A stretch of DNA of 64,000 nucleotides from Auanema rhodensis (GCA_964057225.1 OZ059896.1:7626001-7690000); one strand, 5' to 3'; positions 3,782-10,312 are shown, counted from the first letter of the stretch. A program made the numbers and translations. The notes: generated from the letters alone by a model not told the origin.

Positions 3782-6700
3782 ATGATCGCTCATAAAAGCT
3801 CTGTTTTTTATGTTTTTCTTTTCCTGTTCAACGTAAGTGCTTTAAATAATTATTTTAGAGTTCTAGTGTCTTATCTAAATCAGTTTGGGTGGCCCAAAAA
3901 AGAGAAGATAATATTTAATTTCTCTTGTCTGCATTTAATATTCAAAGTAAAAGGTGTCCTTATTTTATTATAGGTTTTTTTTAAATATCTGGTGTTTCGT
4001 TAAGTGTCATTTCCATGTGATAAACGCCTCAATTCACTTGGATTGGTTTTAAGCTTTTACCTAATATACGGCAGTTCTTGAAAATTCATTACTTTTATGC
4101 GACGTATTACTAGAGCTGAGGTTATGCTACGTTGAATGTGAGACTTGCTTCATTTCAATCTTGAAGTTTCCTGTTTGATCCTTTCAACCAAACACTGGTG
4201 GTGAAAAGTTTGTAACATTTTTTGCTAGTTCAAGATTTTAGAAAAATTCAATCATTTAATCGACCAATTAGCAGACCAGACACTTTTTCATACATCTCAA
4301 CCAGATTTGTGAGGGCAAATTAAAAAAAAATCAATTAATCGTCTGTAAATGGATAATCCTATTAGAAGTAGACGGCAAGAGCGTTATTCGATTAAAGCTG
4401 ATAGGGGCTGTGTTGCCGTACTTCACAAGCACATTGCCAGGTCTGCAGAACGACACATTGACACTTCGGCTTAGTTAAAAAGCTGTTTCCTTTTTTTGGC
4501 AGAATTTAAAGGACCATGCCCCTCCCCTTCTTTGTCATTTAGTTTTTCAATTCATCATTTTCGTTCATTGTGCCAGCTGCTGATATATCTATATTTCGTT
4601 AATCATGTTCACTTTTCATTTTTTTCGCTTTTTACTATCACTTTTATATTTTGATGGGAGGAGTTGAATTAGGACATAGGGGGTATTGCTATGGTGTGAA
4701 TTGGTTTTCAGAGACCGGAGAGATCGTATTTCCGAGATAAGCCCATCTATGCCATGTGGACAAAATTTTGTGAAGCAGGTGTTTCCCTGTTTTTTTGCCC
4801 CCCTTTTTCAGGATAATTCATGGGAGAAGAATAGGGAAGAATTAAGTTTGGCATTGCGGTATTGCTTTAAGATATAATTTCCAAAAATGTGTCACTTCTG
4901 AGATGAGAATTGTGATTTCAATACCATTGAACATTTCTTTTTTCATGTAATATATATGTTTATATACAATTGAAAACTATTCAAAAGGGTTCTATCATTT
5001 GTTAAAAGTGTACGAACTCTTTTCTGAGGCAAACATTAGACTTTCAACTTCTGGTTTCTATTTGACAAGTTTAAGAATGATTGTAAAACCTTGAGGAAAC
5101 ATTAGAAATTTTTGTTTCCATAGAACGTTGAAATTCTTTTGTCCGCTTCTTTCATTTTTCATTTTCTATCTTTGTGTCTATGAAAATTAATATTTCTATT
5201 CCGAATGAATAGTTAAGCAACTTACATGTTTCTATAGCAACATAATGATAGAAAGCTATGTCAGATAACGACTAGTTCCATTTTAACAACATTTTTTATT
5301 GGAATTTTACATTTAAAATAAAGATAATTAGAAATCAAATGCTAAGTGTCACATGTATGTTTTGATTTTCATTATGCATTAAGAATTTTACTGCATATGA
5401 TAACAAAATTTGCTTTCATTCTAGTCTTCTATATAGCTTTCAATCTATATCTTTACTTGTAGGCAATTATGGCGTTAAACGAGTGGGATAAAGGTTTTAC
5501 TCAAATAAGAGCTTTAGTTGGTAACGATGTTCCAGACGAACGAATTAAAAACGTTATGCGAAAGTTTGCACATGTAAGTCTGATATTTCTTTTTTTCTTC
5601 TTGTGTAATTAAAAGAAGAAATATCGAACCGTCTTAATTCATGCGTTATACTCTAATTCTTTCAGTCTAATGAAGGTATATTAACTTCTGATGAGTGTAA
5701 TCAATTGCATTCAAAAGTACTTCAACCACTTAAGGAGATGAAAATCGCTTTGTTAGTTGTGGACTTTCAAAATGATTTCGTATCTGGATCTCTGAGCATT
5801 AAGGTTAGATCAAAGGATACATGAAAGAATTAGATTATGTACCACCTGTCTACATTACTCAGTTTTCTCTTTTAGAGTGGTGATTCTGGAGATGATCCAA
5901 TAGATGCCTTACCTCCTTTGAATAATCTCATTCAAAGTCCTAATCTTGATCAAGTAGTTTATACAATGGTAAGTTTATCTATAGATATACACGTTGTTTA
6001 TTTTTCCAAGTTAGTTTTTTCAATAAAAGACAATATATTTCAAGATCTGGAACTAGATATTTAAAGTGCGATCCTTTTGATATTCTCTTGTTCCTTTCAG
6101 GATTGGCATCCTCCAAACCATATATCTTTCTATGAACATGCTCGTAATTCGGATCGCGTCTTATCGCCTGACGATAAAATCAGAAAACTGAGGCCATTTG
6201 ACATTGTTAGGTTTGAAAAACCTAATACAGTGCAGGTTAGTACCTTTAAAATTTTGGTTGTTTAACTAATTTAATTTGAAATTGGCTTTATTAATTCAGT
6301 TAATAAACATATATTTAACATGAATTAAGTATGTATAAATACGTCGATAAAGGTCTTATGCAAAATAACATAAAAAATGAATAAAATCATCTCAAAAGAA
6401 ACACCGACATTTCTTTCACTTAGTTGACTTTATAAACCATATTTTGTTTGTCTATATACAACTCATTAAAGGAAAATAATATCTTAATGAATGACACATA
6501 GGTTGTAAATCTATTTTGTTGACAACAATGCCACCCTTTCTAGTCGTTGTCTCTTCGTATAATACAATACATGGTATCTCTAACTAACCTTTATGTTGCA
6601 ACTGATCTATATATCCTTGGAATGATACTAGTATTACAGTACAAATAAAGAATAATCCAATCCGAAATATAATAATTTTTGAATAAAAAAAGATTTTTCA

Positions 6701-7250
6701 GATTCTCTATCCAGCACATTGCGTTCAAGGATCATGGGGTGCACAACTTCATTCTCAAATGATATTAGCTCCTGATGCTAAATATGTACGAAAAGGAACT
6801 GATGTGTTTGTTGATAGTTATTCAGCTTTTAAGGAAAATGATGGAGCTAAAAGGTTTCTAGTATACACTTTAAATCACAGTATTAATGCTTGAAAGAGTT
6901 TTAGAACGGAATTAGACTCTGTACTGAAAAACGAAGGCATCACTGCGGTACTAGCTTGTGGTTTGGCTTATGATATATGTGTAATGCATACTTTAAAAGA
7001 TGCAGCTCAATTTGGATATTTATCCGCAATTATAACAGATTGCAGGTAAAATTTTCTTAAATTTCAAATTTCAAACATTATTTCTATTTATTTCAGCAAA
7101 GGATTATCTAAAGAAAAGAAACAAGAAGCCGATGATCTCTTTAATAACAGAAAAATAGCAATAGTTAATGAAACCCAAGCTACCGAAATTATTGATCGTC
7201 ATATCGTTCCAATGGAATGGGTTGAGTATTTGACTGCACGAATCAAGTAG
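3782..7250 (+). CDS. pnc-1: Nicotinamidase (isochorismatase family, PNC-1/PNC-2-like); signal-peptide exon 3782-3832 and internal ATG at 5469
   Basis: Motifs ALLVVDFQNDFVSGSL, DWHPPNHISF, LYPAHCVQGSWGAQLH, RKGTDVFVDSYSAF and CGLAYDICV; stop TAG at 7248-7250. Assignment to pnc-1 versus pnc-2 is not resolved. Confidence 0.92.
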
Positions 7251-7512
7251 ATAGTTCGATAGAACACATGTAAAATTAGAGTTCATTGTGATTGATATGG
7301 AGAGAACGTGTCCTTAGTATAACTAAATTTCAAACTTGATGCTGAGCAGAAGTAATACAACTCATAATTTCGGCCAATTTCTACTTATCAATTTAGTACA
7401 CTTTCTGAAATTTTTATGTATTTTTTAACTTTTTAAATTATTGTAATTTAACATTATAATATTCTTGTAATAAACATAAATACCAAATATAGTACAGTAG
7501 AAACATCAATCA

Positions 7513-8029: not shown

Positions 8030-8281
8030 TCCTCTGAGCACAGATTACAAACTTTTATTGCAATTTAAATATCACAAGGAGCATCCATGAACATTCAGCA
8101 GCTAATTACAAATTCAGTATTAAGTTTATTCAGGTAAATTGAAGAATACCCGTGTATATTATTACAATCGGCAAGAGCTCAAATTAAACAGATCAATAGC
8201 TTAGTTATGAACACAAAATTCGTCAAAAAACGAATTAAGGATGACACACTGTACCTACAAAGGTTTGGGTGAGCACAAGAA

Positions 8282-10312
8282 TTATGCTGTATCTCCATTA
8301 CACAAGCCAGTTGCTTTCGAGAGAATTACATCTTCTATCTCTGCTCGTTCTCTAATTTCTTCCAATGTCCAATCCACCAATAAACGACCATTTTCAAAAA
8401 CTTTAACAAGTGTGTCCTGAAAGTTGTGCTCTTAAAAGCAGTCAAGTCTTATAATCACCTCATCAGTATTTCCTAAACCCTCTTCGATGGTTACATACTG
8501 TCCGTTAATGAGTTCTAAAGTCAATTCTCCCTTTTTCGACTTTTTGCCCGAATCAGTTGCCGGGTTTTTAGAAACATTTCTCTTAATATAAATCTATTTT
8601 AGTTATGTCAAATATTTAAGATTACCTGTTCACCATTAATTGTTACGCGACTACATTTATATGCACATTTTTGGGTATCTCTATCCAGTTTTTGAAGTAA
8701 TGCTCCTCCAGTTCCAAATACGATATTTTCTGTACTCCAACCTGATTCCTAAATTTATATTTCTCTTGCGTTCACATTTCTTTGAAACCTTCAATGCCTC
8801 CAAAATATTTTGAATTGATTCATAAGTTATTCCATCACCTTGCATTACTCTAATATAATTTGGCAAAATTTTGTACCCTTTATTGTTAAGCGTAACAGGG
8901 AATCGTTCCTCCAAAATCGAAAGGACCTGAAGATAAATAGGTTTCTACGTCTTTTACTAATCTTTTATCAATTGTGATAAGACACTAATTCTTTAGAGAT
9001 CTCGAGAGTGACATGTGTTATCGCTCAAAAAATTTCAACATCGCAAAGAATCAATTGAAAAAGAAACTAGACTTACCTTCAGAACTACTTGAATGGGGTC
9101 TCCAGAATCAGGCCGTATGACCAAGCATCCGTTCTCTCCACGACTTATAACTTCGTCTCTTAACTCTTCACCCCATATAGATGCAACAGCATTAAAAATA
9201 TCGTAAGAATCAGAAACAACGGATATTATTCCTAAAGCATATTAGTTAGAATATAAAATTTTAAACTATTATTGCCTTCTGGAAATTTGTGCAGCATATT
9301 CTTATATGCTTCTGATTCTCCACTTTTCCTCCAAGTCGTAATTGTACTATATCAAGTTCAATAGGATCAACTAACCAAATAAATCAATACCTGTGCTCGG
9401 AGGCTGGAACACTGAAACCTGCCATAACGCAAGAATAGTACTTCCTACACATTTGAAGAGCTGCTATAGTATCTGTGCCCATAAAATTAACAAGATGAGC
9501 AGCACCTCCGATGCCAGCACTCTTTAATTAACCAGGTAAAAATATTTAAAGCACTACAAGATACCTCAACTGAAGTTGATCCCCGATATCCAAAATCATG
9601 CAATTTGAATGGAAGTCCGGCTAAAGAGTCACTGGTCTCTAGTAAATACTTAGCGATAATCTCTTTTTGCGCTCTAGAGTTAGTACAAACGGTGAGGGGA
9701 TACCAGGTTTGTACAAGAACAGTCTGTAATAATTGTTGTAATAAAAATACAATTTGAAACCGGAAACCTCAAACCATTGAGTCAACCATGGAACAGCAGG
9801 ATCAGTATTTTCTACTGTAAATAGTACATTTTTTACAGGAACCACTGTGCCTTCTGGGACGGCTTTGATTCGAAGCGGTAGACAACCATTATGCTTCTGA
9901 AAATGTTTGATTTACTTTTATCAGCCATAGACAAATATACTTCAACAATGTGCATCCAACCTTCTTCATTGAATACATCCATATTTCCAAAATGAACCTT
10001 AAATAAACTCTAAAAGAAGCAATATAAAAAAACAACCAACCTTATAAAAATGTTTCGCTTGTTGTACCATAGCTTTATTAACTACAGGGCCAACTAGCCA
10101 TCTTTTCAGAATATATTGTAATCCGAAAAAACATATATTTGGAAATTTACCACCGCGACTTTCAAAATAAGAATACACATGTGTTGTCCCAGGAGGATAT
10201 TGACTATGATGAGTTATCTCAAATTTTTAAATAACTAAATTAGCAGAAACTAAATTATCACTTTATATGAATCAGCTAGATACAGTATGTTTTCGACAAA
10301 ACTTTCTTCCAT
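8282..10312 (-). CDS. NAMPT: Nicotinamide phosphoribosyltransferase (NAMPT/NadV family), multi-exon
   Basis: [103 protein letters not shown] and KKSKKG are NAMPT-type rather than NAPRT-type motifs. Confidence 0.93.

Follow-up and report, generated by a model that had tools for sequence, protein, structure and literature searches.

Nematodes have been thought to do without NAMPT, the enzyme that turns nicotinamide into nicotinamide mononucleotide (NMN), yet in a 64,000-nt stretch of Auanema rhodensis DNA (GCA_964057225.1 OZ059896.1:7626001-7690000; the whole stretch is called the window below) a NAMPT gene and a nicotinamidase gene, whose predicted products draw on the same substrate, lie tail to tail with one small gene of the GGQ release-factor family between them. 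The question raised by this locus is whether the two salvage genes form a metabolic cluster, as the first-pass annotation of the window had proposed, or are neighbours by descent. NAMPT proved to be present in most nematode groups, and the two genes are therefore more likely to have been inherited side by side than to form a new metabolic cluster. We put the probability at roughly 85% that this is an ordinary, vertically inherited nematode locus, in which the proximity of the salvage genes is a relic of old microsynteny.

The DNA analysed is eukaryotic and AT-rich, and its introns are very short. Exon-sized open frames were scanned against Pfam and database searches were run exon by exon; the joined spliced models were compared in local alignments only, with residues 148-595 of a Dirofilaria immitis protein serving as a proxy query. 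For expression, we used RNA contigs from four public runs (X1-X4), all of one study, in which 55% of the sampled words of 5300-10400 are present. The contigs, aligned to 3750-9749, cannot show transcript ends, strands or single molecules. They matched the DNA with 0 mismatches and skipped intron-like segments with GT-AG ends (GC-AG in two cases), and therefore represent spliced RNA from the same organism or a very close strain. All three genes, each present in one copy within the window, are expressed in the same four RNA samples. The first-pass annotation had described an intact nicotinamidase on the plus strand and an intact, intron-containing NAMPT on the minus strand about 1 kb apart, separated only by a small release-factor gene, and these gene calls were right: RNA contigs and homology agree on both models, 1,031 nt separate the stop of the nicotinamidase (7250) from that of NAMPT (8282), and the 139-aa GGQ gene is alone in between.

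NAMPT identity and descent

The minus-strand gene carries the hallmarks of NAMPT along its length. Exon 2 matched the NAMPT_N domain (PF18127) at 3.6e-24 and 85 bits (cutoff 25), exon 3 carries the profile on, and the type II phosphoribosyltransferase domain NAPRTase (PF04095) was found on four exons at consecutive profile positions 15-203. All solved-structure matches of exons 2 and 5 were NAMPT or PBEF-related, and exon 5 aligned to human NAMPT at E 1.8e-20 with about three quarters of the 52 aligned residues identical. Overall identity to animal NAMPTs was 66-92%, including 66-68% to those of sponges, echinoderms and hemichordates, and 151 of the 155 columns that are invariant among 22 non-nematode animal NAMPTs are kept, the four changes being conservative. 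The ligand and catalytic motifs, including GTGG and LQKLDRD, are all present; the corresponding human residues are D16/Y18, R196, D219, H247, R311/D313, D354, G383-384 and R392. The best solved-structure match of exon 2 was 6tac, a human NAMPT loop-deletion mutant, over 59 residues, compared with 69 residues for other human NAMPT entries, and the worm enzyme therefore lacks the 10-residue loop of the vertebrate protein. By these matches, the gene encodes NAMPT rather than NAPRT or QPRT, an animal-type enzyme predicted to convert nicotinamide to NMN. Of its introns, ten are 40-44 nt long and one is 150 nt; introns 5-11 are shown by RNA joints and intron 4 by a loose contig end, while introns 1-3, which lie beyond the aligned segment, were placed from GT-AG sites and homology only. 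Two GC-AG introns, both on the minus strand and both with RNA joints, are intron 7 of NAMPT (9275-9232) and intron 2 of the GGQ gene (7767-7723).

A HMMER scan with exon 2 returned many fragments together with Dirofilaria immitis and Trichinella spiralis proteins named NAMPT or PBEF, and a word-index search with the Dirofilaria proxy protein returned named NAMPTs from ~29 nematode genera of clades I-V. These are Dirofilaria, Setaria, Thelazia, Brugia, Acanthocheilonema, Toxocara, Ascaris, Anisakis, Gnathostoma, Plectus, Necator, Ancylostoma, Cylicocyclus, Parelaphostrongylus, Nippostrongylus, Heligmosomoides, Acrobeloides, Rhabditophanes, Steinernema, Strongyloides, Parastrongyloides, Ditylenchus, Pristionchus, Auanema, Mesorhabditis, Caenorhabditis auriculariae, Trichuris, Romanomermis and Trichinella. 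The first-pass annotation had considered a nematode NAMPT notable, a view that does match the older literature: Carneiro et al. (2013) reported no NAMPT in Nematoda or Arthropoda (PMC3665594), and a schistosome paper of 2020 described schistosomes as nearly unique among parasites in their use of NAMPT (PMC7252647). It no longer holds, since the enzyme is common in relatives, even within Caenorhabditis, which is the first half of what the annotation itself had named as telling against its reading.

A NAMPT phylogeny, suggested by the same annotation as a check, places the nematode sequences among the animal NAMPTs. In a maximum-likelihood tree, 27 nematode NAMPTs form one clade (Shimodaira-Hasegawa-like approximate likelihood ratio test, SH-aLRT, 100), which joins the NAMPTs of sponges, cnidarians, lophotrochozoans, arthropods and deuterostomes. 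The branching inside this clade tracks nematode taxonomy, and the window sequence is sister to an unnamed product of Auanema sp. JU1783 with which it shares 92.5% identity; the two genomes are collinear over ~22 kb. In Trichinella, tblastn segments break where the window gene has its introns after residues 191, 234 and 310. With a single, animal-affiliated clade and splice positions shared as far as Trichinella, NAMPT is thus ancestral in nematodes and vertically inherited; the line to C. elegans lost it once C. auriculariae had split off. NAMPT and nicotinamidase are also known to coexist and to be co-expressed in several invertebrates (Carneiro et al., 2013; PMC3665594), and having both enzymes is therefore the published ancestral state of animals and no special arrangement. 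Both salvage routes are likewise the original state in nematodes, with NAMPT lost toward C. elegans and not in the phylum at large.

Two other accounts of the NAMPT gene were weighed. The gene might encode NAPRT, with which the first-pass annotation had allowed that it could group, or an inactive NAMPT-like protein, which would leave one real nicotinamide route at the locus. Its exons do match a Pfam NAPRTase domain that is shared between the families, and NAMPT activity is a prediction from sequence, but the NAMPT-specific N-terminal domain, top structure matches that are all NAMPT, a place inside the NAMPT tree and intact motifs with nearly all invariant columns kept make this account very improbable, and NAPRT was rejected as the identity of the protein. 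Scarcely credible is a gain by horizontal transfer in this lineage, for example from a bacterial NadV, for which the sole support is the lack of NAMPT in C. elegans and of a nematode NAMPT in the older literature. It was rejected because it is contradicted by 11 spliceosomal introns, some at positions in common with Trichinella, by the closeness to sponge, echinoderm and hemichordate proteins, by the taxonomy-like order within an animal-affiliated clade, and by a flanking GGQ gene that is kept across the phylum.

Gene order around NAMPT

Ten other nematode loci were examined around NAMPT, with a 10 kb flank on each side and tblastn checks. In nine of these (10 of 11 genomes with the window), the GGQ gene comes after NAMPT in the same orientation, at distances that vary widely (Table 1); for Ditylenchus, no GGQ gene was found within 10 kb of NAMPT. 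A convergent nicotinamidase just past the GGQ gene was seen in only three of the 11 genomes, namely the window, Auanema JU1783 and Toxocara canis. The parts that match in Toxocara are the catalytic-Cys exon, at 46% identity, and the C-terminal tail. In the other eight (C. auriculariae, Pristionchus, Ancylostoma, Dirofilaria, Thelazia, Anisakis, Ditylenchus and Trichinella), even relaxed tblastn detected no nicotinamidase in the 10 kb on either side of NAMPT.

On the far side of the nicotinamidase, the window has a Myb-C-like gene whose C-terminal motif SKKW.QITCG.T is common to the genes that face the NAMPT-GGQ pair in Dirofilaria (locus 21164-27045) and Thelazia (18622-23610), both of which end in FQNSKKW[LF]QITCG.TPHQ, and the gene facing the pair in Trichinella (locus 14034-15856) has a precomputed Pfam Cmyb_C match. 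The link is drawn from this shared motif and the precomputed match, and a Pfam scan of short C-terminal Myb-C-like pieces gave no match. The genomic position of the Myb-C-like gene is, on this evidence, very old, and the nicotinamidase adjacency is no better conserved than that of the unrelated GGQ and Myb-C-like neighbours. On the simplest reading, an old block ran from the Myb-C-like gene through the nicotinamidase and on to the oppositely oriented GGQ gene and NAMPT, and several lineages have since lost or moved the nicotinamidase.

The gene downstream of NAMPT matched Pfam RF-1 at 6.5e-9, and among solved structures it was closest to 2rsm and 7a5h, both C12orf65 entries, at E ~2e-6 for an exon of 32 aa. 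C12orf65/MTRFR is a mitochondrial ribosome-rescue factor. Contigs from three of the four runs (X1, X3 and X4) continue unbroken over 7916-8415 from NAMPT into the GGQ gene; in run X2, the NAMPT contig stops at 8078 and the GGQ gene forms a separate contig. The intercistronic stretch holds AATAAA at ~8131-8126 and 8058-8053, the former ~100 nt ahead of an acceptor, CTCAG, that ends at 8034, 4 nt before the GGQ start codon. The two genes thus look co-transcribed as an operon-like pair, and NAMPT followed by a mitochondrial C12orf65/MTRFR-type factor would form an operon that the nicotinamidase faces tail to tail. In the spirurids Dirofilaria (locus 1-17081) and Thelazia (7110-13610), NAMPT has a same-strand riboflavin kinase (Flavokinase) gene as its immediate upstream neighbour, and some public models merge the two; Dirofilaria immitis has two tandem NAMPT copies. 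On the other side, the GGQ transcript ends at ~7401-7464 and the nicotinamidase transcript extends to ~7393-7475, such that the convergent transcripts end inside 7401-7475 or overlap there by at most ~75 nt. Rfam and tRNA scans of 3300-10500 gave no match.

Table 1. Features of the locus in the window and spacing of the NAMPT-GGQ pair in other nematodes. Positions are counted from the first letter of the window.
Feature	Position	Strand	Size	Support or remark
Myb-C-like gene, upstream of nicotinamidase	1633-3425	+		C-terminal end FQYSRKWLRIVTGDTKAQ
Nicotinamidase exon 1 with trans-splice-type acceptor	3776-3832	+		Acceptor TTGTAG/G, AG at 3774-3775; run X2 contig starts at 3774
Nicotinamidase (PNC-type) coding sequence	3782-7250	+	8 exons, 324 aa	Spliced RNA contigs and homology; stop 7248-7250
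Nicotinamidase exons	3782-3832, 5463-5573, 5666-5803, 5876-5968, 6101-6235, 6702-6853, 6905-7045, 7097-7250	+		All 7 GT-AG joints in RNA contigs
Convergent 3'-end zone, nicotinamidase and GGQ transcripts	7401-7475			Nicotinamidase contig ends 7393-7475, GGQ contig ends 7401-7464
GGQ release-factor-family gene (C12orf65/MTRFR type)	7513-8029	-	3 exons, 139 aa	RNA joints; exons 8029-7916, 7863-7768, 7722-7513
Intercistronic stretch, NAMPT stop to GGQ ATG	8030-8281	-	252 nt	Operon-like layout
NAMPT coding sequence	8282-10312	-	12 exons, 482 aa	ATG at 10312, stop 8284-8282; RNA contigs and homology
NAMPT exons	10312-10262, 10217-10041, 9997-9941, 9896-9768, 9723-9565, 9521-9391, 9346-9276, 9231-9077, 8926-8789, 8748-8626, 8581-8459, 8416-8282	-		Intron support as given in the text
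NAMPT-GGQ gap, Auanema JU1783			246 nt	
NAMPT-GGQ gap, C. auriculariae			347 nt	
NAMPT-GGQ gap, Pristionchus			523 nt	
NAMPT-GGQ gap, Thelazia			1.5 kb	
NAMPT-GGQ gap, Ancylostoma			3.2 kb	
NAMPT-GGQ gap, Toxocara			4 kb	
NAMPT and GGQ gene fused into a single public gene model				Dirofilaria, Anisakis, Trichinella pseudospiralis

Could the two salvage genes nevertheless have been kept together by selection? A metabolic mini-cluster, in which shared chromatin or converging 3' ends co-ordinate or mutually tune the competing routes, would fit the same three-gene arrangement in Toxocara canis, which is far from Auanema, the transcript 3' ends that meet or overlap at 7401-7475, and the expression of both salvage genes in all four RNA samples. 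The nicotinamidase is, however, missing from the 10 kb around NAMPT in eight other genomes, its 3' overlap involves the GGQ gene and not NAMPT, and the GGQ and Myb-C-like neighbours are at least as widely conserved, which points to general synteny retention. The salvage genes also share no transcription unit or promoter, being convergent on opposite strands with 5' ends ~6.5 kb apart and an unrelated gene in between. We consider such a cluster improbable, and the small metabolic cluster proposed by the first-pass annotation is weakly supported. Its adjacency is seen again in Toxocara and in Auanema JU1783; against it stand the separate 5' ends, the eight genomes that lack the arrangement, and the unrelated genes that keep to the neighbourhood at least as well. 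A broader version, in which the block was kept since before the split of clades III and V through functional coupling, for example between NAD (nicotinamide adenine dinucleotide) supply and mitochondrial translation or by balancing the nicotinamide routes, is also unlikely in our judgement; if it were true, the block would have been broken when the C. elegans lineage lost NAMPT.

Several points weigh against a mere relic of microsynteny. That two given genes should be immediate neighbours both in Toxocara (clade III) and in Auanema (clade V) has a chance probability of ~1e-4 per genome; the NAMPT-nicotinamidase adjacency is therefore old, and selection may have helped to keep it. In filariae and Trichinella, the nicotinamidase was either lost or moved, the survey covered a 10 kb flank for each genome, and the Toxocara locus stops within the nicotinamidase gene. 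An operon of NAMPT and the GGQ gene is suggested by contigs, which do not establish that both genes share one RNA molecule, and no spliced-leader sequence was seen in the RNA contigs. We still favour an inherited neighbourhood whose adjacency has probably not been under selection. As a modest new point, NAMPT and the GGQ gene form a pair conserved phylum-wide, with the nicotinamidase as an old, often-lost neighbour.

The nicotinamidase gene and its first exon

Exon 7 of the plus-strand gene matched the Pfam Isochorismatase domain (PF00857) at 4e-11, in keeping with an isochorismatase-like fold, and the best solved-structure matches of the exons were the nicotinamidases 9u8m, 2wt9, 2h0r and 3r2j. 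A nicotinamidase was the top match of exon 7, and all five matches of exon 6 were nicotinamidases, 3r2j being the Leishmania enzyme. The motifs of an Asp-Lys-Cys triad and a zinc site can be read off the model (VVDFQNDF, DWHPPNH, PAHCVQ, VRKG and ACGLAYDICV), and the alignment to 9u8m spans the HCVQ, KG and CGLAYD segments; residue roles (the triad, and a zinc site of Asp-x-His plus His) follow those established for yeast Pnc1. Judged by these matches, the predicted protein is nearer to nicotinamidases than to the remaining cysteine hydrolases in the isochorismatase superfamily, a PNC-type enzyme that would convert nicotinamide to nicotinic acid.

The N-terminus of this protein is encoded separately from the rest, in a first exon followed by an intron of 1,630 nt. 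Exon 1 encodes MIAHKSSVFYVFLFLFN, which runs on as AIMA in exon 2 and is hydrophobic and signal-peptide-like; together with the start of exon 2, it reads MIAHKSSVFYVFLFLFNAIMA, a strongly hydrophobic stretch. Auanema JU1783 keeps the exon, its acceptor and its donor, with the peptide MAYKSSVFCLFLCLIS. The best 12-aa Kyte-Doolittle mean was 2.54 for the nicotinamidase N-terminus versus 0.62 for that of NAMPT, which has no hydrophobic leader and begins directly at the conserved core. The first-pass annotation had suggested a division of labour between a secreted nicotinamidase and a cytosolic NAMPT. The conserved hydrophobic exon in one gene and its lack in the other fit this as far as the peptides go, and a predicted secreted nicotinamidase opposite a cytosolic NAMPT is plausible, with secretion itself putative. 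A secreted isoform of C. elegans PNC-1 has reportedly been described already. The database model of the JU1783 nicotinamidase (305 aa; locus 12911-14632) omits the signal-like first exon (16021-16150), which lies ~1.5 kb upstream.

The mRNA appears to start at a trans-splice-type acceptor that sits 6 nt ahead of the ATG (3782). Nematode spliced leader SL1 ends in AG, and the first two letters of the X2 nicotinamidase contig match this AG. The mRNA is thus a candidate for trans-splicing onto the signal-like exon. Contigs of X3 and X4 reach ~1.2-1.4 kb further upstream of 3750, and the Myb-C-like stop at ~3425 is ~350 nt from the acceptor at 3775; the nicotinamidase may be a downstream operon gene behind the Myb-C-like gene. 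In the non-coding DNA between these two genes (3486-3600), tblastx segments are 79-86% identical to Auanema JU1783 in all six frames, above the ~70-75% DNA identity of coding regions in the same comparison.

An in-frame Met at 5469 could serve as the start of an intracellular nicotinamidase form; no transcript for it was found among the RNA contigs. Within intron 1, a 150-nt block (4326-4474) is 73% identical to Auanema JU1783, has no Rfam or tRNA match, and is adjoined by low-depth unspliced RNA contigs (4477-4922). The block may serve a non-secreted isoform as an alternative first exon or as a promoter, or it may give rise to a non-coding RNA.

Implications and comparison with known systems

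The locus itself is ordinary, its genes being functional-looking orthologues of well-known families, and the main value of the analysis is corrective. The statement that nematodes lack NAMPT (PMC3665594, echoed in PMC7252647) is true of C. elegans and not of the phylum: Ascaris, Toxocara, filariae, hookworms, whipworms, Trichinella and Strongyloides have an apparently functional NAMPT. This is relevant where C. elegans serves as a model of nematode NAD metabolism, and for NAD salvage as an anthelmintic target. Nematode operons are known to occur from Trichinella to C. elegans (PMC7668243, PMC1657053), and the NAMPT-GGQ pairing is a small addition to the operon-like pairs common to Dorylaimia and Rhabditida.

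Compared with animal NAMPTs (human NAMPT/PBEF/visfatin and the invertebrate enzymes of Carneiro et al., 2013), the window protein has the same two-domain layout of NAMPT_N and phosphoribosyltransferase, shares all ligand and catalytic motifs and likewise lacks a signal peptide. It differs from the vertebrate enzyme in the absence of the 10-residue loop, and the worm gene is set apart by its 40-44-nt introns and its place directly upstream of a GGQ-factor gene. The annotated nematode NAMPTs (among them Ascaris suum F1L3Y4, Brugia malayi A0A0J9XYZ8 and Trichinella spiralis XP_003380227.1) are orthologues within one clade; outside Auanema, identity to most other nematodes is 70-77%, consistent with species-level divergence only. 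In several of these database models, NAMPT has been wrongly joined to the GGQ gene or to the upstream flavokinase.

The NAMPT-GGQ pair resembles SL2-type operons (Wenzel et al., 2020, PMC7668243; Guiliano and Blaxter, 2006, PMC1657053) in that both genes are on the same strand, the stop-to-ATG distance is short (252 nt), a poly(A) signal precedes an acceptor close to the start codon of the second gene, RNA contigs span both genes, and clades I, III and V all keep the pairing. It departs from them in that no spliced leader was seen in the contigs, its processing as an operon being putative, and in that the gap widens to 1.5-4 kb in large-genome species. The nicotinamidase, finally, is like C. 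elegans PNC-1 and yeast Pnc1 in its predicted isochorismatase fold, Asp-Lys-Cys triad, zinc-site motifs and signal-like N-terminus, but unlike PNC-1 it coexists with NAMPT, which C. elegans does not have.

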